A stretch of DNA of 64,000 bases, from assembly GCA_965240325.2 (NCBI GenBank), contig OZ251222.1, forward strand, positions 2,666,001 through 2,730,000, written 5' to 3'. Below are positions 19,419 to 57,901 of this stretch, in pieces; the stretch's first letter is position 1; each line of letters starts with the position of its first letter. A program made the translations under genes and the position numbers. The notes beneath the pieces are model-generated. The model did not search any database. It was not told the DNA's origin and was given only the letters and a program-made list of their open reading frames with translations. This DNA is from Rebecca billardiae RCC1528. Taxonomy: Eukaryota; Protista; Haptophyta.

Positions 19419-20433
19419 TCGTCGTTCGGCGCTTTGCGTACTCACATTCGCGCGAATCGCATCGGCCCATTTCGTCGTGTCGCAAGTTCACACTTCACAT
19501 TCACACAAACCGTCACTTTCTCGCTAGACATTTCACGAGGGAAAGGGCGCGCTGATATTGGCACGCGGGTATCATCTTGCATTGGACTACGAGCATCGGA
19601 GCAACCTCGCGCGGCCTCGCGTCGACGACGTCCCGTGAAGAACGACAAGGCGGAGAGCCCACGCCATTCCAAGGGTCGCCCTTGCGTTGACGTCTCGTTC
19701 GGTCGCGCGACGAGCGGCTCGCGTGCGGCGCCAAGCGAGAGACGCGGGGCGCGCGGCGGGCGCACGCGCGAGGCTGCCCACCACGTGCACGCGCGCGAAC
19801 CCGCCGGCTCGGGCGACACGCCGCCGCCTCAGCTCGAGCACGAGCGCGAGGCGTGGCGCCGGCTCGGTGGGCGGCGGACGGCTCGACCTGCACTGCGGTG
19901 CCAGCGGATGAAGCGGCAAGCCCGGCGGGCGCATACGCGCAGGTCCGCCCTCCACGCGCGAGCGCGCGACTGCGTGTTCCACGAGCTGCAGCAGGCGGCC
20001 GCGGGCTGGTCGGCGGCCGGCGAGGTCGGCGGAGTGCCGCCCGGCCCGCGTTCTCGCTTGGGCGCGGGCCACACTCTCACTCACAGCGCGGGGCGTGGTG
20101 CTGCGGACGGGCCAGTCATTGCAGCGCGCACTCCGTGGTCAGACGTGCACACGCGCGCGCGTCGTCAGCCCCGCCGCTGCGCCCCTGTGGCGCCGTTGGC
20201 AGCGTCGGAATTCCGAGCTCGGGCTACCGGCCCGGCGTGCCATCATGCGTTTCAGAAACAGGTTTCCAGCCCAAGTTGACGCGCAGCGCCAACCCATATA
20301 TTACGTACTATTTTCATATTAATCAGTTGAGAGGGAGTATATGGGGTACTACTGAGCAGTTCAGTTTCAGCAACGGTGAGAGTTCGAACACTAATTCGGG
20401 GGGGGGCATTGCCAATTTCTTTGGCATTGCTTT
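19154..20433 (+). mobile_element. Putative non-autonomous Helentron-type element (HINE/DINE-1-like)
   Basis: T-rich start TTTATTT, then ACGCCCCCC and a (GTCT)n microsatellite. The 3' end has the complementary G-run GGGGGGCAT, hairpin GCATTGCCAA-TTTCT-TTGGCATTGC (20406-20430) and TTT. No convincing CDS inside. Confidence 0.45.
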
Positions 20434-26112: not shown

Positions 26113-26138
26113 GTTACGACAAGGGCCCTTGGTTACGA
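26113..26138. mobile_element. Excision footprint of a CAAGGG-ended (P-like) transposon
   Basis: GTTACGA-CAAGGG-CCCTTG-GTTACGA: a 7-bp direct repeat around 6 nt of each terminus, identical to the ends of the elements at 55453 and 56515. Confidence 0.8.
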
Positions 26139-41400: not shown

Positions 41401-44400
41401 ACGTTCACCAAGCTCGTGCTCGAGCTCAACTCGATCTCTGGCAGCTTGCCCACCGAGGTGGGGCGTATGGGCCGCTTTGAGCAAATGTGCGCGCACCGCG
41501 CGAGGGCGCCCTCTGCGCGCGCGCTGCCGACGCGAGACCGCGCGCGCGCCGTGTGCTGCCGCTCATACGTGCGCGGCGGTACGTGTGCGCGCGCCCTGTC
41601 CGCAGGCTGCTTCGCGACAACCTGCTCGTCGGCAGTATCCCAACGGAGGTGGGTGGTCTGAGCAGCCTGGCGCTGATGCAGCTGAACGACAACTCGCTCG
41701 ACGGGAGCATCCCCACGCAAGTGAGCGGCATGACGAGCCTCACGGCGATGGCGCTGTACCGCAACTCGCTCGTCGGCGCGCTCCCGACGGAGGTGGGCGA
41801 GATGACGAGCCTGACCGAGCTGGAGGGCTTCCGCAACTCGCTGAGCGGCCCCGTGCCGACGGAGGTCGGTGCTCTGACAGGCCTCACCAACCTGCTCTTT
41901 GACCGCAACTCGTTTGACAGCCTGCCGACTGAGCTCGGCTTGCTCTCGAGCCTGAGGCTGATGGGCTTGGACCTGAACTCGCTGGCGAGCAGCATCCCGA
42001 CCGAGCTTGGCGACATGAGCACGCTCGCGCTCATGTACCTGTACGACAACTCGCTCGTCGGCACGATCCCGACCGAGGTTGGCGAGCTGACGAGCCTCTC
42101 GTGGCTGCGGCTGTACCGCAACTCTCTGTCGGGCACGATTCCGACGGAGGTGGGCGCGCTGACGATCGGCAGTGCGCTGCTTCTGTTCGGCAACTCGCTC
42201 GACGGCAGTGTGCCCACGGAGCTCGGCGCGATGGTGAGCCTCACCTCCATCTCGCTGGACGACAACCCGATCGTGAGCGTCATTCCGACCGAGATTGGCG
42301 CGATGACGAGTCTCACGGCAATGAGCGTCGCCGACACGCTCATGTGTGGCGGCGAGCACAACTTCACGGTGGTGACGCCCGCAGTGCTGCCGGCGTGCCC
42401 GCCGTCACCTCCGCCGAGCCCGCCGAGCCCGCCGAGCCCGCCGCCGAGCCCACCTCCCAGCCAGCCTCCGTTTCCACCTCCATCCCCGCCGCCGTTGTCA
42501 CCCCGCGTGCCACCTCCGAGCCCACCGCCCAGCCCGCCACCGCCGACGCCCCCGCCCAGCCCGCCGCCGAGTCCGCCGCCCAGCCCACCACCGTCACCTT
42601 TGCCTCCGCCAAGCCCACCACCCAGCCAGCCTCCGATGCCGCCGCCATCGCCACCACCATCGAAGCCACCCGCGCCACCTCCAAGCCCGCCGCCGAGCCC
42701 GCCACCGCCGGTGCCACCGCCCATCCCACCGCCATCACCGCCGCCGAGTCCGCCACCTGTGCCACCGCCATCGCCACCGCCAAGCCCGCCACCGTCACCT
42801 TTGCCGCCGCCGAGTCCACCACCCAACCAGCCTCCGTTGCCGCCGCCATCCCCGCCGCCGTCGTTGCCACCTGCGCCACCTCCAAGCCCGCCACCGAGCC
42901 CGCCACCTCCGAGCCCGCCACCGAGCCCGCCGCCATCGCCGCCGCCGAGTCCGCCACCTGTGCCACCGCCATCGCCACCGCCGAGCCCGCCACCGTCACC
43001 TTTGCCGCCGCCAAGCCCACCTCCCAGCCAGCCTCCGTCGCCGCCACCGTCCCCGCCGCCGTCGTCGCCACCCGCGCCGCCTCCAAGCCCGCCGCCGAGC
43101 CCGCCACCGCCGATGCCACCGCCCATCCCGCCGCCATCGCCGCCGCCGAGTCCGCCACCTGTGCCACCGCCATCCCCACCTCCGAGCCCGCCACCGTCAC
43201 CTTTGCCGCCGCCAAGCCCACCTCCCAGCCAGCCTCCGTCGCCGCCACCGTCCCCGCCGCCGTCGTCGCCACCCGCGCCGCCTCCAAGCCCGCCGCCGAG
43301 CCCGCCACCGCCGATGCCACCGCCCATCCCGCCGCCATCGCCGCCGCCGAGCCCGCCACCTGTGCCACCGCCATCGCCACCGCCGAGCCCACCACCATCA
43401 CCTTTGCCGCCGCCGAGTCCACCACCCAACCAGCCTCCGTTGCCGCCACCGTCGCCGCCGCCGTCGTCGCCACCCACGCCGCCACCAAGCCCGCCGCCGA
43501 GCCCGCCACCGCCGATGCCACCGCCCATCCCGCCGCCATCGCCGCCGCCGAGTCCGCCACCTGTGCTACCGCCATCGCCACCGCCGAGCCCGCCACCGTC
43601 ACCTTTGCCGCCTCCAAGCCCACCACCCAACCAGCCTCCGTTGCCGCCGCCGTCGCCGCCGCCGTCGTCGCCACCCGCGCCACCTCCAAGCCCGCCGCCA
43701 AGCCCGCCACCTCCCAGCCCGCCACCGAGCCCGCCGCCGTCACCGCCGCCGAGACCGCCTCCTGTCCCACCGCCATCGCCACCGCCGAGCCCGCCACCGT
43801 CACCTTTGCCTCCGCCGAGCCCACCTCCCAGCCAGCCTCCGTCGCCGCCGCCATCCCCGCCGCCGACATCGCCACCCGCGCCACCTCCAAGCCCGCCGCC
43901 GAGCCCGCCACCACCGATGCCCCCACCGAGTCCGCCACCGAGCCCGCCTCCAAGCCCCCCGCCCGCTCCGCCGCCTTCCCCACCGCCGAGCCCACCGCCG
44001 TCACCTTTGCCACCGCCGAGTCCACCTCCCAACCAGCCTCCGTTGCCGCCACCGTCGCCGCCGCCGTCGTCGCCACCCACGCCGCCTCCAAGCCCGCCAC
44101 CCAGTCCGCCACCTCCCAGCCCGCCACCGAGCCCGCCGCCATCGCCGCCGCCGAGTCCGCCACCTGTGCCGCCGCCATCGCCACCGCCGAGCCCGCCACC
44201 GTCACCTTTGCCTCCGCCGAGCCCACCTCCCAGCCAGCCTCCATCGCCGCCACCGTCCCCGCCGCCGTCGTCGCCACCCGCGCCGCCTCCAAGCCCGCCG
44301 CCGAGCCCGCCACCGCCGATGCCACCGCCCATCCCGCCGCCATCGCCGCCGCCGAGCCCGCCACCTGTGCCACCGCCATCGCCACCGCCGAGCCCACCAC

Positions 44401-47400
44401 CATCACCTTTGCCGCCGCCGAGTCCACCACCCAACCAGCCTCCGTTGCCGCCACCGTCGCCGCCGCCGTCGTCGCCACCCACGCCGCCACCAAGCCCGCC
44501 GCCGAGCCCGCCACCGCCGATGCCACCGCCCATCCCGCCGCCATCGCCGCCGCCGAGTCCGCCACCTGTGCTACCGCCATCGCCACCGCCGAGCCCGCCA
44601 CCGTCTCCTTTGCCGCCTCCAAGCCCACCACCCAACCAGCCTCCGTTGCCGCCGCCGTCGCCGCCGCCGTCGTCGCCACCCGCGCCACCTCCAAGCCCGC
44701 CGCCAAGCCCGCCACCTCCCAGCCCGCCACCGAGCCCGCCGCCGTCACCGCCGCCGAGACCGCCTCCTGTCCCACCGCCATCGCCACCGCCGAGCCCGCC
44801 ACCGTCACCTTTGCCTCCGCCAAGCCCACCTCCCAGCCAGCCTCCGTCGCCGCCGCCATCCCCGCCGCCGACATCGCCACCCGCGCCACCTCCAAGCCCG
44901 CCGCCGAGCCCGCCACCACCGATGCCCCCACCGAGTCCGCCACCGAGCCCGCCTCCAAGCCCCCCGCCCGCTCCGCCGCCTTCGCCACCGCCGAGCCCAC
45001 CGCCGTCACCTTTGCCACCGCCGAGTCCACCTCCCAACCAGCCTCCGTTGCCGCCACCGTCCCCGCCGCCGTCGTCGCCACCCGCGCCGCCTCCAAGCCC
45101 GCCACCCAGTCCGCCACCTCCAAGCCCGCCACCGAGCCCGCCGCCATCGCCGCCGCCGAGTCCGCCACCTGTGCCGCCGCCATCGCCACCGCCGAGCCCG
45201 CCACCGTCACCTTTGCCTCCGCCGAGCCCACCTCCCAGCCAGCCTCCGTCGCCGCCGCCATCCCCGCCGCCGTCGTCGCCACCCGCGCCGCCTCCAAGCC
45301 CGCCGCCGAGCCCGCCACCTCCGAGCCCGCCACCGAGCCCACCGCCATCGCCGCCGCCGGGTCCGCCACCTGTGCCACCGCCATCCCCACCGCCGAGCCC
45401 GCCACCGTCACCTTTGCCTCCGCCGAGCCCACCTCCCAGCCAGCCTCCGTCGCCGCCGCCATCCCCGCCGCCGACATCGCCACCCGCGCCACCTCCAAGC
45501 CCGCCGCCGAGCCCGCCACCACCGATGCCCCCACCGAGTCCGCCACCGAGCCCGCCTCCAAGCCCCCCGCCCGCTCCGCCGCCTTCGCCACCGCCGAGCC
45601 CACCGCCGTCACCTTTGCCACCGCCGAGTCCACCTCCCAACCAGCCTCCGTTGCCGCCACCGTCCCCGCCGCCGTCGTCGCCACCCGCGCCGCCTCCAAG
45701 CCCGCCGCCCAGTCCGCCACCTCCCAGCCCGCCACCGAGCCCGCCGCCATCGCCACCGCCGAGTCCGCCACCTGTGCCGCCGCCATCGCCACCGCCCAGC
45801 CCACCACCGTCACCTTTGCCGCCGCCGAGTCCACCACCCAACCAGCCTCCGTCGCCGCCACCGTCCCCGCCGCCGTCGTCGCCACCCGCGCCGCCTCCAA
45901 GCCCGCCTCCGAGCCCGCCACCTCCGAGCGCGCCACCGAGCCCGCCGCCATCGCCGCCGCCGAGTCCGCCACCTGTGCCGCCGCCATCGCCACCGCCGAG
46001 CCCACCACCGTCACCTTTGCCGCCGCCGAGTCCACCACCCAACCAGCCTCCGTCGCCGCCACCGTCCCCGCCGCCGTCGTCGCCACCCGCGCCGCCTCCA
46101 AGCCCGCCTCCGAGCCCGCCACCTCCGAGCGCGCCACCGAGCCCGCCGCCATCGCCGCCGCCGAGTCCGCCACCTGTGCCGCCGCCATCGCCACCGCCGA
46201 GCCCACCACCGTCACCTTTGCCCCCGCCGAGCCCACCTCCCAGCCAGCCTCCGTCGCCGCCACCGTCCCCGCCGCCGTCGTCGCCACCCACGCCGCCACC
46301 AAGCCCGCCGCCGAGCCCGCCACCTCCGAGCCCGCCACCGAGCCCGCCGCCATCGCCGCCGCCGAGTCCGCCACCTGTGCCGCCGCCATCGCCACCGCCC
46401 AGCCCGCCACCGTCACCTTTGCCTCCGCCGAGCCCACCTCCCAGCCAGCCTCCGTCGCCGCCACCGTCCCCGCCGCCGTCGTCGCCACCCGCGCCGCCTC
46501 CAAGCCCGCCGCCGAGCCCGCCACCACCGATGCCCCCACCGAGTCCGCCACCGAGCCCGCCTCCAAGCCCCCCTCCCGCTCCGCCGCCTTCGCCACCGCC
46601 GAGCCCACCGCCGTCACCTTTGCCACCGCCGAGTCCACCTCCCAACCAGCCTCCGTTGCCGCCACCGTCCCCGCCGCCGTCGTCGCCACCCGCGCCGCCT
46701 CCAAGCCCGCCGCCGAGCCCGCCACCACCGATGCCCCCACCGAGCCCGCCGCCATCGCCGCCGCCGAGTCCGCCACCTGTGCCGCCGCCATCGCCACCGC
46801 CGAGCCCACCACCATCACCTTTGCCTCCGCCGAGCCCACCTCCCAGCCAGCCTCCGTCGCCGCCACCGTCCCCGCCGCCGTCGTCGCCACCCGCGCCACC
46901 TCCAAGCCCGCCGCCGAGCCCGCCACCTCCCAGCCCGCCACCGAGCCCGCCGCCATCGCCACCGCCGAGTCCGCCACCTGTGCCACCGCCATCGCCACCG
47001 CCGAGCCCACCACCGTCACCTTTGCCCCCGCCGAGCCCACCTCCCAGCCAGCCTCCGTCGCCGCCACCGTCCCCGCCGCCGTCGTCGCCACCCGCGCCGC
47101 CTCCAAGCCCGCCGCCGAGCCCGCCACCTCCGAGCCCGCCACCGAGCCCGCCGCCATCGCCGCCGCCGAGTCCGCCACCTGTGCCGCCGCCATCGCCACC
47201 GCCATCGCCACCACCGTCACCTTTGCCGCCGCCGAGTCCACCACCCAACCAGCCTCCGTCGCCGCCGCCGTCGCCGCCGCCATCACCGCCACCCGCGCCA
47301 CCTCCCAGCCCGCCGCCGAGCCCGCCACCTCCGAGCCCGCCACCGAGCCCGCCGCCATTGCCGCCGCCGGGTCCGCCTCCTGTCCCACCGCCATCGCCAC

Positions 47401-50400
47401 CGCCCAGCCCGCCACCGTCACCTTTGCCTCCGCCGAGCCCACCTCCCAGCCAGCCTCCGTCGCCGCCGCCATCCCCGCCGCCGACATCGCCACCCGCGCC
47501 GCCTCCAAGCCCGCCGCCGAGCCCGCCACCGCCCATGCTACCACCGAGTCCGCCACCGAGTCCGCCTCCAAGCCCCCCGCCCGCTCTGCCGCCGTCGCCA
47601 CCACCGAGCCCGCCACCGACACCTTTGCCGCCGCCGAGTCCACCTCCGAGCCAGCCTCCGTTGCCGCCGCCATCCCCGCCGCCGTCCCCACCACCCGCGC
47701 CGCCTCCAAGCCCGCCGCCCAGCCCGCCACCTCCGACAGCCCCGCCGAGTCCACCGCCAAGCCCGCCGCCGCTTTCGCCGCCTGGTCCGCCACCGTCGCC
47801 CCCACCAAGCCCACCGCCGTCACCTTTGCCTCCGCCGAGCCCACCTCCCAGCCAGCCTCCGTCGCCGCCGCCATCCCCGCCGCCATCGTTGCCACCCGCG
47901 CCCCCTCCAAGCCCGCCGCCCAGCCCGCCACCGCCCGTGCCACCACCGAGCCCGCCGCCAAACTTGCCGCCGCGCATGCCGCCTGTTCCGCCGCCGTCGC
48001 CTCCACCGAGCCCACCGCCGTCACCTTTGCCTCCGCCGAGCCCACCTCCTAGCCAGCCTCCGTCGCCGCCGCCGTCCCCGCCGCCATCGTCGCCACCCGT
48101 GCCGCCTCCAAGCCCGCCGCCCAGCCCGCCACCGCCAATGCCACCACCAAGCCCGCCGCCGATGCCGCCAACCCCTGTTCCGCCTCCAAGCCCGCCACCG
48201 GTGCCACCGCCGAGCTTGCCCCCGACTCTGCCGCCGTCGCCACCACCGAGCCCACCGCCGTCACCTTTGCCTCCGCCGAGCCCACCTCCCAGCCAGCCTC
48301 CGTCGCCGCCGCCGTCCCCGCCGCCGTCGTTGCCACCCGCGCCACCTCCAAGCCCGCCGCCGAGTCTCCCACCGCCAACGCTCCCGCCACGCCCGCCGCC
48401 AAGCCCCCCACCGCCCCCGCCGCCTGTTCCGCCGCCGTCGCCACCGCCGAGCCTACCACCGTCACCGTCGCCTCCGCCGAGCCCACCTCCCAGCCAGCCT
48501 CCGTCGCCGCCGCCGTCGCCGCCGCCGTCGTCGCCGCCCGCGCCGCCTCCAAGCCCGCCGCCCAGCCCGCCACCGCCCGCATTGCCGCCTGCCCCGCTGC
48601 CACCACCCCGCATCTCACCCTTGCCACCGCCACAGCCATCACTGCCACCGCACCGCCCGCCGCCCCCCCCTTCGGCACCGCCCGTACCACCACCGACACC
48701 ACCCCCGTTGGCGCCGCCGCCGCCCCCTCCGCCGCCGCTCCCTGTCCTCGGCTGCACGAACTCGGCTGCGCTCAACTTCAACGCGATCGCCACAGACGAC
48801 GATGGCAGCTGCATCCTCGAGACCAGGGGCTGCACTCTTTCGCTCGCGCCCAACTTCGACTCCCGCGCCGACGCAGACGACGGGAGCTGCGCCAAGTTCA
48901 CGGCTGGGTGCACGGATCGCACCGCGGCCAACTTTTACAGGCTCGCCGACGTCGATGACGGCAGCTGCTTCTTCTACGCCTACGGCTGCAACGAGCGCGG
49001 CGCGTGCAACTACGACGCCACGGCGACCGCGAGCGATGGCTCGTGCGAGTACTCGTGCTACGGCTGCACCGACGCGAGCGCTAGCAACTACGCCTCCGAG
49101 GCGACGGTCGACGACGGCGGGTGCGAGTTCATCTTCCGGGGCTGCACGAGCACCCTGGCCAACAACTACGATTCGACGGCCACTGTGATCTCTGGGTGCG
49201 TGTTCCCGCGGCCGGGCTGCCGCGACAGCCGCGCGTCCAACTTCGACTCCCTGGCGGACGCGGACGGCATCGCGTGCACCATCGAGGGCTGCGTGCTGCC
49301 CTCGGCGCTCAACTTCGACAGCGAGGCGACCAAGGACGACGGGACGTGCGTGCTGCCCGTGCGCGGCTGCACCGACCCGGCCGCACTCAACTTCCGCTCG
49401 GACGCAACCGTCGACTCTGGCCGCTGCGTGCTCCCCGTGCTCGGGTGCACGCTGACGAACGCGCTGAACTACGACCCCGCGGCCAATGCGGACGACGGCT
49501 CGTGCGAGCTGCCGGTTGTCGGCTGCACCGACCCCGAGGCGGCCAATTACCGCCGGCTCGCCACCGTCGACGCTGTGCCCAGCGTGTGCACGTACACCGG
49601 CTGCACAGACCCGTCGGCTCGCAACTTCGACGCGCGCGCAAGCATCGATGATCGGACTTGTCTCCGGCACATCGACGGGTGCACCGACCCGCTGGCCGCC
49701 AACTACGCGCGTGCCGCGACGCGGGACAGCGGCTTGTGCGTGTACGCGGGCTGCACCGATCCGCGAGCGACCAACTACGACGAGTCCACGACCATCGACG
49801 ACGGCTCGTGCAAGTTCGCCATCGCTGCCGGCACAGCGCGTGTACTCGTGCCTCTCGGCGGCTGCGAGATCAGCACGGTGAGCACCGAGGGCACGGCCTT
49901 GGACGCGGCGATGACGCGCCGCACCGGCGCGTTCCAGCTGTACTACACGAGCGCGGCCGCGCACGTGCTCCTCACGCCGGGCGGGTTCTGCCAGGACACG
50001 TACGGCGCTTCGTATGGCGTGTACCTCAGCTCGCCCGTGGACGCAGCCGAGCTCACGCCGCTGACGACGCTGTACGTCGCGCTGCTCGCGGGCGGCGTGC
50101 GCGTGGACGACGCGATCACGCGCGTCGCCACCTGCCTCGGGCTCGACGCGTCCCTCGACCTCCGCTTCTACTCGACGCTCGCGTACTTCTACGGCGACGT
50201 GCGCGCCCGGCCCGTCCTCGCGGCGCATCTCGTCGTCGTCGAGCTGCTGCGAGGCACGTACGCGCTCTATGGCAGCTCGTCTCGGGACGCGACCCAGCTC
50301 GACATTGAGACTGCAGCGGTCCTTGGCGTGCTCGACGCGTGTGAGGCAAGCAGCGGCGTGCAGGTGGACTTCTCAGACGCCGACACCGTCGAGGCAGTGC

Positions 50401-53900: not shown

Positions 53901-55406
53901 TCATGCGGTCGCTGTAGTAGCTGGATGTCGCTGATGACGACGCGAGGTGCTGTGATTTGTCCACCTCCCGTTCATCCCGCTGGCGGCCGCTGCCATCATT
54001 TCAGCCATCTGCTGCTGCGACTCGGACGATGCGGCAAGCAGCCTGCTGCGATGCTGCGACGTCGGTGCCGCCTCTGGCGCATACACGGGCCAGCGCGCAT
54101 ACCTGGGATCGCCCAGCAGCTGCGCGAGCTGCTCGTTGAACGGCCGGTAGAAGCCCTCCACCTCGGCACGCAGCGCGCTCGACATGGCCCACGAGCGCAC
54201 CTGCCCGCCGGGCGAGCGCTTGCGCGGCGGCCTGTGCGGCTTGGCCGCCATCGCGTCGAGCTCGGCGTCGGTGGCCTGCAGGCCGGTGAACGCCACGACG
54301 CGCGCGAGCACCGCACGGCGCGACGCGAAGAAGTCCTCGCTCAGCTCGAAGTGCGCGTCCGCTCGCCCGCCCACCGCCTCGAGCCAGTCGTGCACAAAGG
54401 GCGCGTACAGGCCCTTGATCAGCTGGTCGCAGTGGTAGTACAGGTCCTGCTGGGCTGACGAGAGGGCCTCAAACTTGAGCGCGCACGCACGCGCGCCGTG
54501 CCGCGCGGCGCATGCGCGGAACGCGCCGGCCTGCTCCTCCATGTACGCGCGCACGCCGTCCTCGCTGTCCCCGTAGTGCAGGTGGTACTGCCCGAACGAG
54601 AAGTACGCCGCCCAGAGCCGGTCGACCGGGTTGCGCAGCAGCGCGACCACGCGCAGCCGCGAGCCGTGCGCAAATGCCATCAGCCGCGGCAGCGTGAGCT
54701 CGGCGGGCGGCGCGGCGGCGGCGGCGGCGACCGGGCCGCCCGCGTTCGGCGGCGTTGCCACGTCGTTGCGCCACGCCATCTCCGCGCAGTGGTCGAGCTT
54801 GTAGTGGCGGCGGTCCTTGCAGCGCTCGGCGAACTGCGCGGGCAGCTGCTCGCGGTGGCACAGCTTGCCGCACCACGAGAAGGCGGAGTGGAAGGCGTGG
54901 TGCACGCGCTTCGACTCGCCCCACGTGAAGGTGAGCAGGTCGAGGTTCACGCTGAAGGAGAGCCGCCGCCCATCCGCCTCGATCGCGGGGACGGCGCCCT
55001 CCATATTCCCGCGCACGAACGAGGGGAATGGCGCGGCGGTGGGCGTGTACGTCCAGTGGTTGGTGAAGGGCTTGCGCGGCTGTGCAACGCTCGCGACGCC
55101 GCGGAGGAGGAGCTGCGCCAGCGATCGCGCCCCGCAGTTGTACCCGCCGATGATGTAGAAGGCGGGCAGGCAGCGCAGCGCGCCGCTGGTGCCGTTGCGC
55201 CAGCAAGGGTTGGCGGTTGCGCTCTCAAAGCGCGGCGGCAGGCCGACTGTCGTGTAGAAGTCGACCACGTCGCGCGCGACCGTGCGCGCGACGGCATCCA
55301 CGTCGGTCGAGTGGCTCGCCGTCCACTCGGGCGTGTACTCCCACGCCAAGGCGAGGCCCAAAACACGCAGCAGCACCAGCACGCGGCGCCCGCCGTGCGC
55401 GACCAT
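53901..55406 (-). CDS. CHST15 (GalNAc4S-6ST)-like sulfotransferase-fold protein with degenerate PAPS motifs (501 aa)
   Basis: ATG at 55406 with signal/anchor RVLVLLRVLGLALA; NPCW...LRCLPAFYIIG, LLRNPVDRLWAAY, GLYAPFVHDWL, FYRPFNEQLAQLLGD. The ORF-track extension to 55862 lies inside a transposon TIR. Confidence 0.8.
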   Translation of the reverse strand: MVAHGGRRVLVLLRVLGLALAWEYTPEWTASHSTDVDAVARTVARDVVDFYTTVGLPPRFESATANPCWRNGTSGALRCLPAFYIIGGYNCGARSLAQLLLRGVASVAQPRKPFTNHWTYTPTAAPFPSFVRGNMEGAVPAIEADGRRLSFSVNLDLLTFTWGESKRVHHAFHSAFSWCGKLCHREQLPAQFAERCKDRRHYKLDHCAEMAWRNDVATPPNAGGPVAAAAAAPPAELTLPRLMAFAHGSRLRVVALLRNPVDRLWAAYFSFGQYHLHYGDSEDGVRAYMEEQAGAFRACAARHGARACALKFEALSSAQQDLYYHCDQLIKGLYAPFVHDWLEAVGGRADAHFELSEDFFASRRAVLARVVAFTGLQATDAELDAMAAKPHRPPRKRSPGGQVRSWAMSSALRAEVEGFYRPFNEQLAQLLGDPRYARWPVYAPEAAPTSQHRSRLLAASSESQQQMAEMMAAAASGMNGRWTNHSTSRRHQRHPATTATA

Positions 55407-55452
55407 TTCACGCGCCACGCCGCTGTACCGACGTCGTCGTCGTCGGTGCGTC

Positions 55453-57656
55453 CAAGGGTGGTCAGGGTCGCCGGTCGCCGACTCCAGCGGAGGCCGGCGC
55501 CGGAGCTTCACTTCCGATTTTTTGCAGCGGCGCGGCGCGCGGGGCCGCCGCCGCTGTGGCGGGCCGCTCGGGGCGTGCACGGCGTGGGCTCGTGCGGCCG
55601 CTGCCGCGCACGCCGAGCGATCCGGCGCGGGCTCGCGGCTTGTCGATGGCCTCGCGCGCCGCAGCGCGACGCGCGCCTTGCCTAGCTTCGCCTGTCTCGC
55701 GCCTTGGCCGCCGTGCACGCGTGCGCCGCCAAACCGCAAGCTCGGCATACCTCTCAGCCGAGCGTGCACGTGCCTTGCGCGACGCGACGCGGGCATTGCC
55801 GCCAGGCGATGTAGGCGTAGTGCGAGCGCGCGCCGTGAAGCCTCGGCGCGGATCGAGAACAATGAAATGATGCCGCGTACGCGCGTGGACCGTCTGTGCG
55901 TTGAGCAGTGCTGAAAGCTGCACGACTGACTCTCTTGCCGGGGCGATCGTCACGTCGCATCGTCACGCAAGGCTCACACACACGTCATAGTGGTGTTCAT
56001 CGTTTTGGCTACAACGCTCGACTAGTCTTCACGAGTCGCAGCGTCGCGATAGCCCATCGTTCAACGGAGGACCGTGATGTCCATTGGTGGTTGATGCGTC
56101 AGCAGTTGTCGACAGCTGACCGAGACGTTGAAGACACTCTCGATCCGCGCTGAGGCTTCACGGCGCGCGCTCGCACTACGCCTACATCGCCTGGCGGCAA
56201 TGCCCGCGTCGCGTCGCGCAAGGCACGTGCACGCTCGGCTGAGAGGTATGCCGAGCTTGCGGTTTGGCGGCGCACGCGTGCACGGCGGCCAAGGCGCGAG
56301 ACAGGCGAAGCTAGGCAAGGCGCGCGTCGCGCTGCGGCGCGCGAGGCCATCGACAAGCCGCGAGCCCGCGCCGGATCGCTCGGCGTGCGCGGCAGCGGCC
56401 GCACGAGCCCACGCCGTGCACGCCCCGAGCGGCCCGCCACAGCGGCGGCGGCCCCGCGCGCCGCGCCGCTCCAAAAAATCGGAAGTGAAGCTCCGGCGCC
56501 GGCCTCCGCTGGAGCAAGGGAGTCAAGGGTGCCCGCGCCCCAGTGGCGCGCTCGGCGGATGTTGGCACACAGATTTTTGCCCGCGGCCTGCGGCGGGCGG
56601 CGGCGAGGGCGTGCTCCGGTGGCGGAGCGAGCGCACGGGGCACGGCGCTGCGGGCGCGGATGTGCCCGCGAAGCCGGCGCGTGCGGACGGGCAGTTGCGG
56701 GAGAGCATATGGCGCCCTCCTGCGCCGCGCGACTTGCGCCACGCCTCTTTCGCCTCGGCTCAGAGCAGCGCGCACGCACGCGCCGCCTCAAGGCCAGCCT
56801 TGCCGCGCCGCAGCCGGCCGCGCGCGCGCCGTGCGCGGCGTGGTCGGGAAGGAGCGGGCGCTGCTGCCGGGCGAGATGGCGACATCATGTGCGCACGCCA
56901 TGCCGCCCCGCCACGCCTTGACGAGTGCGTCGTCGGTCCGTTTGCATGCCTCTTTGACTTGTCACAAATGGTGTGCACGGCCTCGCGGTCGTGACCCTTG
57001 GCGGGACGATCATTGAGACACAGAACAGTGCCAGACGGGCACGCGGGCTACTCTTACATGAATGTTCATCACCGCGTGGTCATGCAGAAGTGCTGGGTGC
57101 GACGCTTTCCTCGCGCTGATGCTCTTTCATCATCTTCTTCGAGCTCAGGTCTGGCTTCAGGCACGACAAGTAATCAGCACTCGTCAACAGCTGTGCGGAT
57201 CCGTTCTCGTGCCCTTTCGCGGCGCCACGGGGCGGCATGGCGTGCGCACGCGATGTCGCCATCTCGCCCGGCAGCAGCGCCCGCTCCTTCCCGACCACGC
57301 CGCGCACGGAGCGCGCGCGGCCGGCTGCGGCGCGGCAAGGCTGGCCTTGAGGCGGCGCGTGCGTGCGCGCTGCTCTGAGCCGAGGCGAAAGAGGCGTGGC
57401 GCAAGTCGCGCGGCGCAGGAGGGCGCCATATGCTCTCCCGCAACTGCCCGTCCGCACGCGCCGGCTTCGCGGGCACATCCGCGCCCGCAGCGCCGTGCCC
57501 CGTGCGCTCGCCCCGCCACCGGAGCACGCCCTCGCCGCCGCCCGCCGCAGGCCGCGGGCAAAAAGGTGTATCCCAACATCCGCCGAGCGCGCCACTGGGG
57601 CGCCCGCGGGCACCCTTGACTCCCTTGGCTGGAGTCGGCGACCCTGACCACCCTTG
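55453..57656. mobile_element. Non-autonomous foldback DNA transposon, P-superfamily-like (outer; 1084 bp without the nested copy)
   Basis: Ends CAAGGG/CCCTTG; 7-bp TSD GTGCGTC at 55446-55452 and 57657-57663. TIRs are 55453-55858 versus 56138-56514 plus 57635-57656; core is 279 bp. Confidence 0.9.
56515..57627. mobile_element. Nested second foldback element of the same class (1113 bp)
   Basis: Ends CAAGGGAGTCAAGGGTGCCC / GGGCACCCTTGACTCCCTTG; 7-bp TSD GCTGGAG at 56508-56514 and 57628-57634. TIRs are 56515-56910 versus 57228-57627; core is 317 bp. Confidence 0.92.
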
Positions 57657-57901
57657 GTGCGTCCTTGGTCGGATTGTACTGCTGCAAGTCAGTTGGTATG
57701 AGGGTAAGTCAGTAATTCGGCTTTTGGACGAAAGTCAAAAATCATTGTAAGAAAGTTACCCGCTTACCAAGGGCTCCAACGGCTTGAATATTGGCTTTGG
57801 CTCCGTTCGCGGCAATGATGAACAATACCAGACTTATTATGCTCGGCCACGCTCGGTGGTGAGCAGCGGGGAACACTTGCGTGCGCAGCTTCTCCAGGGC
57901 G

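Follow-up and report, generated by a model that had tools for sequence, protein, structure and literature searches.

Nested CAAGGG-ended foldback transposons of the haptophyte Rebecca billardiae belong to a multi-family group with 7-bp target-site duplications, and a P-type transposase is a plausible source of their mobility

A 64,000-nt stretch of the Rebecca billardiae RCC1528 genome (contig OZ251222.1, positions 2,666,001 to 2,730,000; hereafter the window) carries two distinct non-coding foldback transposon families, one nested in the other. The assembly comprises 72 Mb in 41 contigs, and the genome has a G+C content of ~70%. The two elements are additional members of one multi-family group, which we call the CAAGGG foldbacks after their ends, and what we say below about the elements themselves we hold with near certainty. 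The best explanation overall is that they are cut-and-paste foldbacks mobilized in trans, with a P-type enzyme as the likeliest class, an explanation to which we give an even chance. The system is young and abundant, and its host belongs to an algal lineage that is very GC-rich and has been little studied.

The outer element (family 1) occupies positions 55453-57656 of the window; it begins with CAAGGGTGGTCAGGG and has the exact complement at its other end. An inverted-repeat scan of the window returned the outer element as repeats I1 and I5 and the inner element (family 2) as repeats I2 and I4. Complementarity is 99% between the outer arms (55482-55858 and 56138-56514) and 97% between the inner arms (56535-56917 and 57221-57603), and the 22 nt at 55452-55473 pair with 57636-57657 at 100% (I5). 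The inner element lies inside the right arm of the outer one, so that 22 bp of the outer end (57635-57656) remain past the inner target-site duplication (TSD). Removing the inner element together with one copy of its TSD restores an outer element of 1084 bp, which matches the uninterrupted copies elsewhere. The left end of the outer element also holds a 7-bp tandem duplication, GTCGCCG (55467-55480), which most of the other copies compared (n = 29) lack. The repeat GTGCGTC can be read as 9 bp long at the outer site alone; neither the inner element nor the other copies allow this. A Pfam scan of the open reading frames (ORFs) within both elements gave no match, and neither element is protein-coding. 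Long open frames are expected by chance in a genome of ~70% G+C. When folded as single-stranded DNA, the inner element forms a single long hairpin (-712 kcal/mol). An earlier note made from the letters of this DNA had described the nested foldback pair, and its coordinates, the 7-bp TSDs GTGCGTC and GCTGGAG and the 22-bp spacing all hold; its claim of two non-coding families with CAAGGG...CCCTTG ends, mobilized in trans, is supported. The note also held the bodies of the terminal inverted repeats (TIRs) of the two families to be dissimilar, and BLAST between the arm bodies of the families found no match; nevertheless, the first ~100 nt are collinear, at 9 standard deviations above shuffles.

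A genome-wide search recovered at least 40 full-length copies per family, spread over many contigs and with 89-100% identity to those in the window; for family 2, at least 42 full copies lie outside the window. For the tabulation of TSDs, 60 genomic loci were fetched (L-numbers below; C-numbers are contigs of this genome, G000), and 48 copies with distinct flanks were counted. Perfect 7-bp flanking repeats were present in 43 of these 48 independent copies, and the five without a perfect repeat either have been rearranged or are embedded in repeats of another kind. Such copy numbers and flanking repeats are far beyond chance. The earlier note had asked for this search and flank tabulation and had named 9-bp TSDs with AAGGG...CCCTT ends, as in Mutator-like elements (MULEs), as the finding that would speak against a P assignment; the 9-bp arrangement fits 7 of the 43 copies, which is close to the chance rate of ~12%. 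Insertion targets form a weak palindrome, approximately S-Y-Y-S-R-R-S, with more symmetric positions outside the duplication. The terminal motif CAAGGG-NRKYMM-GGG has 437 + 431 matches in the genome compared to 4 + 4 for the reversed motif, which served as the control for all motif counts, which implies that the group numbers more than 400 elements and comprises at least seven families. These are named by their six variable bases: TGGTCA (family 1), AGTCAA (family 2), CGGTAA, AGGTCC, TGTCCA, TAGTAA and GAGTCA. Nearly all pairs of terminal motifs are spaced 1.08-1.14 kb apart, and four further families met in the fetched loci have 7-bp TSDs too. The families have ~35 terminal bp in common (CAAGGG, 6 nt, GGG, a CCAGYG-like word and a T-run further in), and they are built on one plan of ~1.1 kb, with two inverted arms of ~400 bp around a loop of ~290 bp. 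They thus have TIRs, a TSD, no coding capacity and many dispersed copies, as class II non-autonomous TIR elements do, and their length of 1.1 kb exceeds the usual size limit of miniature inverted-repeat transposable elements (MITEs). In metagenomes, the terminal motif gave seven chance-like matches, all without partners. A different motif, CAAGGGTGGCA[C/T]GGG, is found at ~80 dispersed sites in G000 (e.g., C1:1176084, C5:2841802 and C11:2068350); it was rejected as an autonomous family with asymmetric ends because no inverted partner stood at a consistent distance, and it may mark a single end of some asymmetric element or lie within a repeat of a different kind.

Hundreds of probable scars have been left in this genome, which would allow the excision chemistry to be inferred from sequence alone. 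Head-to-head remnants of the form CAAGGG-N(0-24)-CCCTTG occur at 334 genome sites compared to 13 in the control. In the 50 listed sites, known families can be recognized by their initial 6-12 nt, joined to the final 6-12 nt, and the joins are often symmetric (6+6, 7+1+7, 8+1+8 or 10+10). The commonest scar is the bare 12-mer CAAGGGCCCTTG, with 73 genome copies and none in the control, and perfect 7-bp TSDs surround both of the two readable copies (Table 1). Longer spacers of 25-54 nt occur at 105 sites compared to 20 in the control, at a density ~4x lower than that of the short spacers, and much of this excess consists of small multi-copy elements of 37-55 bp. These micro-elements, which have identical copies on different contigs, include a palindrome of 37-38 bp (CAAGGGGCTTACAAAA...) with CAAGGG...CCCTTG ends (C8:2054376-2054413, C10:1907126-1907163 and C12:888801-888838) and a 55-bp unit with the same ends (C1:1102458-1102512 and three more sites). 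Several CAAGGGCCCTTG footprints lie 20-60 bp from full-length family-1 copies (C8:53527, C13:1443528 and C3:374294), which suggests that the same small target regions are used repeatedly. One candidate in the window, CAAGGGTCGCCCTTG at 19670-19684, was rejected as a footprint. It has no flanking repeats, and the 15-mer recurs at C3:548296, C3:2909496 and C5:205793 and also at C13:1888291, where it has the same left flank as in the window; it is thus part of another repeated unit and therefore not an independent footprint.

Enzymes of the hAT type hairpin the flanking DNA and are not known to leave element nucleotides at the donor site, and Tc1/mariner excision leaves only 2-3 nt. The short remnants described above are probably excision footprints in which both TSD copies and mostly 6-10 nt of each element end are kept. 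Element nucleotides kept at the donor site would mean that the non-transferred strand is cut inside the element, which would point to staggered donor cleavage as in P elements rather than to hAT hairpin chemistry. The stagger may be ~6 nt, given that the six bases left per end in the modal 6+6 remnant are the same six, and the only ones, that do not vary between families. The Drosophila P transposase cuts 17 nt inside the element end and produces 8-bp TSDs (PMC7776569). The CAAGGG foldbacks would resemble the Drosophila P element in staggered donor cleavage that leaves element nucleotides, and they resemble it in the preference for GC-rich palindromic targets; the P element differs in its 8-bp TSD, 31-bp TIRs and 17-nt stagger, as compared to the 7-bp TSD, 400-bp arms and commonest remnant of 6+6 nt of the CAAGGG foldbacks.

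A TSD of 7-8 bp is a feature of the P superfamily, and 7 bp was found in the 43 copies tabulated above and in the four further families. Termini of the P superfamily reportedly follow the rule CANRG, and all families start with CAAGG(G), which fits it; however, the end rule of hAT elements is YARNG, which CAAGG fits as well, so this end does not discriminate between the two. In the genome, a search with the Pfam domain PF21787 (TNP-like RNase H) gave one match (31.9 bits), PF21788 matched weakly and nothing was found with PF12017. The match lies in an open frame of 1317 codons (C21:1532842-1536795), in which the C-terminal ~620 amino acids are P-type and the N-terminal extent is putative. SDFPHLIK and EHHFG, two motifs of P transposases, are present in the protein, as are D121 and D234, which are invariant columns in the alignment of the family, and E520, which is nearly so. 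A full HMMER search with this protein yielded 645 relatives, unlike a word-index protein search, which returned none. When the nine best relatives were scanned, seven matched the TNP-like RNase H domain at E ≤ 0.001, and four of these seven also matched a GTP-binding domain. A profile of 16 relatives searched against the PDB matched the Drosophila P transposase (6P5A) and nothing else (E = 3.6e-18), and the catalytic motifs FD and EH line up in this match. The same profile found only the C21 locus in the genome, and the gene is single-copy. Since it has neither inverted repeats nor CAAGGG ends, the C21 gene is a candidate and not a demonstrated partner of the foldbacks. Taken together, these results strengthen the P-superfamily assignment made in the earlier note, which is plausible and not proven: the 7-bp TSD, the CAAGG end, the footprints and a lone P-type gene with D/D/E speak for it, and the autonomous partner with matching ends is missing; the search for a P-type transposase ORF bounded by CAAGGG...CCCTTG that the note had proposed ended in one P-type gene that lacks these ends. 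A P-superfamily transposase as the mobilizing enzyme is in our judgment evenly balanced, and the C21 gene in particular as its source is a tentative proposal that falls somewhat short of that. An intact long terminal repeat (LTR) retrotransposon (L062/L063, C21:1524538-1532329) has inserted 0.5 kb downstream of the P-type gene, where the sequence is AT-rich; its two 563-bp LTRs are 100% identical, and a 5-bp duplication, ATATA, flanks it.

Several observations weigh against mobilization by a P-type enzyme and against the C21 gene as its source. No TIRs, CAAGGG ends or footprints occur around the C21 gene (within ~10 kb; 35 kb read). The contigs of its relatives are transcripts or short metagenome pieces and are also without TIRs, so they yielded no comparative link between this enzyme clade and CAAGGG ends, and the relatives in other protists resemble ordinary expressed genes. 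No N-terminal DNA-binding part was recognized in the C21 protein, and the gene may be domesticated and unrelated to the foldbacks. No autonomous CAAGGG-ended element was found in the genome, where a few ~3-kb elements with CAAGGG ends (C1:1322407-1325462 and C1:4365152-4368397) are known by their end positions only, as is another long element at C25:572463-574327; the ~3-kb elements might carry an unrecognized transposase. As to the footprints, only two could be checked for TSDs, and symmetric remnants could instead come from host nucleases that cut an extruded hairpin stem.

The ~3-kb elements bear directly on another explanation, by which the foldbacks would belong to the haptophyte-specific TIR group hATv (Repbase; 'Shanks'), with their own unrecognizable transposase encoded on rare longer CAAGGG copies and with the C21 gene as an unrelated host gene. 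Shanks of Tisochrysis lutea and other haptophytes has 7-bp TSDs and many non-autonomous copies of 486-3050 bp, and it is recently mobile, having moved in culture; its 6.8-kb autonomous copies carry two orphan ORFs for which neither Pfam nor HHpred gives a match (PMC10138859). The Shanks ends (TAGGGCGGTCAAAC..., with TAGTAAGGGT ~30 nt in) have the short terminal words AGGGCGGT and TAGTAAGGGT in common with the CGGTAA and TAGTAA families, a likeness that rests on a comparison by eye of words of 8-10 nt only. However, Shanks has 26-bp TIRs that start with TAGGG and has no foldback build, and its exact end motif is absent from the genome: a pattern search for Shanks-type termini (TAGGGYGGTMA-N4-GGG) gave no matches compared to seven in the control. 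In addition, if hATv enzymes hairpin the flanks as hAT enzymes do, their footprints should hold no element nucleotides, whereas 6-10 nt per end are kept here. We regard the hATv explanation as a serious rival, though one that is less likely than not.

Membership of another known superfamily (Mutator/Foldback with 9-bp TSDs, canonical hAT with 8-bp TSDs or Tc1-like) is very unlikely. The long TIRs are reminiscent of MULEs and of the Foldback (FB) elements of Drosophila, yet the 8-10-bp TSDs of Mutator and FB elements are not found, the 9-bp reading being at chance level. The compatibility of the CAAGG end with YARNG would allow canonical hAT, which was rejected because the TSD is 7 bp and not 8 bp, no hAT RNase H domain is present in the genome and the footprints keep element ends. 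The remnants of 6-10 nt per end also exceed the 2-3 nt left by Tc1/mariner. The genome holds a single, broken hAT fragment, a match to the dimerization domain (Dimer_Tnp_hAT; 31.5 bits) at C17:765118-765351 on the minus strand, in an 89-aa frame that is interrupted by a TAG stop.

That the structures are non-mobile, as local inverted duplications or as foldback-chimera artefacts of long reads, could be entertained for the locus L027, where a palindrome extends at least 300 bp past the element ends and foldback reads can yield such structures, but with more than 80 dispersed copies in unrelated flanks with exact 7-bp TSDs and 73 dispersed CAAGGGCCCTTG footprints, the TSD tabulation rules this out in practice, and its probability is next to nil.

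The earlier note had taken the near-identity of the arms as a sign of recent activity. Copies within one family differ by up to 9%, and the arms of a single copy are typically 98-99% alike. When the consensus of the younger subfamily was compared to that of the older one, left-arm differences were mirrored in the right arm at 19 of 20 positions in family 1 and 14 of 16 in family 2. The arms thus evolve in concert and their identity does not date an insertion, which leaves the argument of the note unsupported as it was made. Arm identity thus reflects arm-to-arm copying or selection for pairing and not age, and it must not be used to date such insertions. Some copies are at least 99% identical to each other, and recent activity is better argued from these.

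In Drosophila, P elements insert near or into other copies, and double P insertions with one TSD are known at singed. Among the CAAGGG foldbacks, we found three tandem pairs with one common TSD, in which the same 7-mer occurs three times around two elements (CCCGGAC in L004/L058, GCTGAGG in L048 and GCTGGTC in L032). Insertions 15-56 bp inside the end of another member were found in the window pair and in L051/L059, L040, L033 and L060. In L008:1445-2633 (G000 C1:945401-946589), 56-bp ends of the TAGTAA type mirror-flank an entire family-1 copy, and this composite has a 7-bp TSD of its own, GCCAGGC. At C10:2718437-2719575, 15-bp ends of the TAGTAA type mirror-flank a complete family-2 copy, as judged from coordinates only. 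In L027 (C7:2272286-2273334 and flanks), the palindrome mentioned above is centred on a family-1 copy, takes in a CACACTGG-type microsatellite outside the CAAGGG ends and has no TSD; it is either a true inverted duplication seeded by the foldback or an assembly artefact. The L027, L008 and C10 structures suggest that arm-to-arm copying can overrun the element ends, and such overrun copying is a possible route to new families that have the same ends and new arms. The mirrored substitutions and the composites would together offer a concrete route for the origin and upkeep of long-armed palindromic families. As a separate observation, three insertions of an unrelated element ending in ...TTTAAATCATAGAAT share one position, directly after CAAGGGNGT in a CAAGGG terminus (L009, L057 and L037; junction at ~1493-1500 in the orientation compared). 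The inserted body is ~445 bp in two of the three loci (L009 and L037), where the two are 98.7% identical to each other, and in L037 an apparent 3-bp duplication, AGT, accompanies the split in the CAAGGG terminus.

With a P-type enzyme as the mobilizing transposase, the following course can be proposed. A transposase supplied in trans would bind the foldback ends; it would cleave the transferred strand at the boundary of the element, and the other strand several nucleotides further in. The element would then enter a weakly palindromic target, with the insertion staggered by 7 bp, often beside or just inside another member; in the window, the younger element would have landed 22 bp within the end of the older one. 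The donor site would be rejoined with both TSD copies and 6-10 nt of each end kept, most commonly as CAAGGGCCCTTG, and arm-to-arm copying would keep the two arms of a copy alike. In its strongest form, a single stationary P-type gene without ends of its own would sustain more than 400 protein-less foldbacks in at least seven families, with a cut of ~6 nt that matches CAAGGG, compared to 17 nt in Drosophila P, and new families would arise by insertion into an end and mirroring by arm-to-arm copying, for which L008, C10:2718437-2719575 and the mirrored flank of L027 are the instances cited. This full proposal is speculative, and we think it unlikely to be right in all its parts. If the lone P-type gene does drive the foldbacks, P-type transposition would be going on outside animals, and a gene that looks 'domesticated' would still move DNA. 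The CAAGGG foldbacks are also hazards for assembly and for rearrangement.

Galileo, a P-superfamily element of Drosophila (PMC4168063), is similar to the CAAGGG foldbacks in being a foldback with very long TIRs, in being mostly non-autonomous and in having 7-bp TSDs and a palindromic target; its TIRs also change structure readily and evolve more slowly than the rest of the element (PMC4168063). In contrast to the elements described here, Galileo has autonomous copies that encode a THAP-bearing P transposase, and its target is AT-rich (GTANTAC), whereas that of the CAAGGG foldbacks is GC-rich and weak. Unlike Galileo, the CAAGGG foldbacks form at least seven families of the same 1.1-kb geometry with unrelated arms, and they occur in an alga and not in an insect. 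BuT5, a MITE of the Drosophila repleta group, is likewise a non-coding element of ~1 kb that is unclassifiable alone, is served in trans by a P-type transposase and has only its ends in common with the master element (PMC3698922). A divergent P-element master has been identified for BuT5, whereas the lone P-type gene here has no matching ends, and BuT5 is not a long-arm foldback, unlike the CAAGGG elements.

The elements lie in a divergent intergenic gap, which measures ~260 bp without them and is stretched by a 2.2-kb hairpin-prone insert. The insertion is 46 bp upstream of the ATG at 55406, in agreement with the earlier note, which had placed it less than 50 bp from a sulfotransferase gene. 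The identity of that gene is less firm, since the Sulfotransfer_3 and Sulfotransfer_1 matches to its 501-aa ORF are sub-threshold (E = 0.067 and 0.13). No empty-site allele of the insertion was found in the assembly, in which the left flank matches an 85% paralogue alone, on contig C5. We rate the consequence of the insertion for this locus as ordinary.

Table 1. Coordinates of the nested foldback pair, the readable footprints and the neighbouring ORFs (window positions unless a locus is named)
Feature	Position	Strand	Basis or remark
Outer-element TSD, left copy, GTGCGTC	55446..55452	.	letters identical to 57657-57663
Outer element (family 1, 'TGGTCA'), left arm, starts CAAGGGTGGTCAGGG	55453..55858	+	I1 and I5; compared with 29 other copies
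Outer element, 279-bp loop	55859..56137	+	G+C 0.56 vs 0.75 in arms
Outer element, right arm, proximal 377 bp	56138..56514	+	I1, 99% complementary
GCTGGAG, target of the inner insertion, last 7 bp of the outer proximal right arm	56508-56514		sequence read
Inner element (family 2, 'AGTCAA'), 1113 bp, ends CAAGGGAGTCAAGGG...CCCTTGACTCCCTTG	56515..57627	+	I2 97%, I4 100%
Inner element, arms	56515-56917, 57221-57627		repeat scan
Inner element, 303-bp loop	56918-57220		repeat scan
Inner-element TSD, second copy, GCTGGAG	57628..57634	.	letters and TSD tabulation
Outer element, right arm, distal 22 bp, ending ...GACCACCCTTG	57635..57656	+	I5; uninterrupted in other copies
Outer-element TSD, right copy, GTGCGTC	57657..57663	.	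sequence read
Footprint GTTACGA + CAAGGGCCCTTG + GTTACGA	26113..26138	.	one of 73 12-mer copies
Footprint CAAGGGCCCTTG flanked by GTCGGGG	L029:1423-1448		second readable copy
Neighbour ORF, 501 aa from first ATG at 55406, sulfotransferase-like	53901..55406	-	sub-threshold Pfam
894-aa ORF, GTG start	opens 57881	opposite to 501-aa ORF	no curated domain match

Elsewhere in the window, ~6 kb at 42000-48000 have a G+C content of 0.76-0.79 and a GC skew of -0.38 to -0.46, unlike the remaining window.

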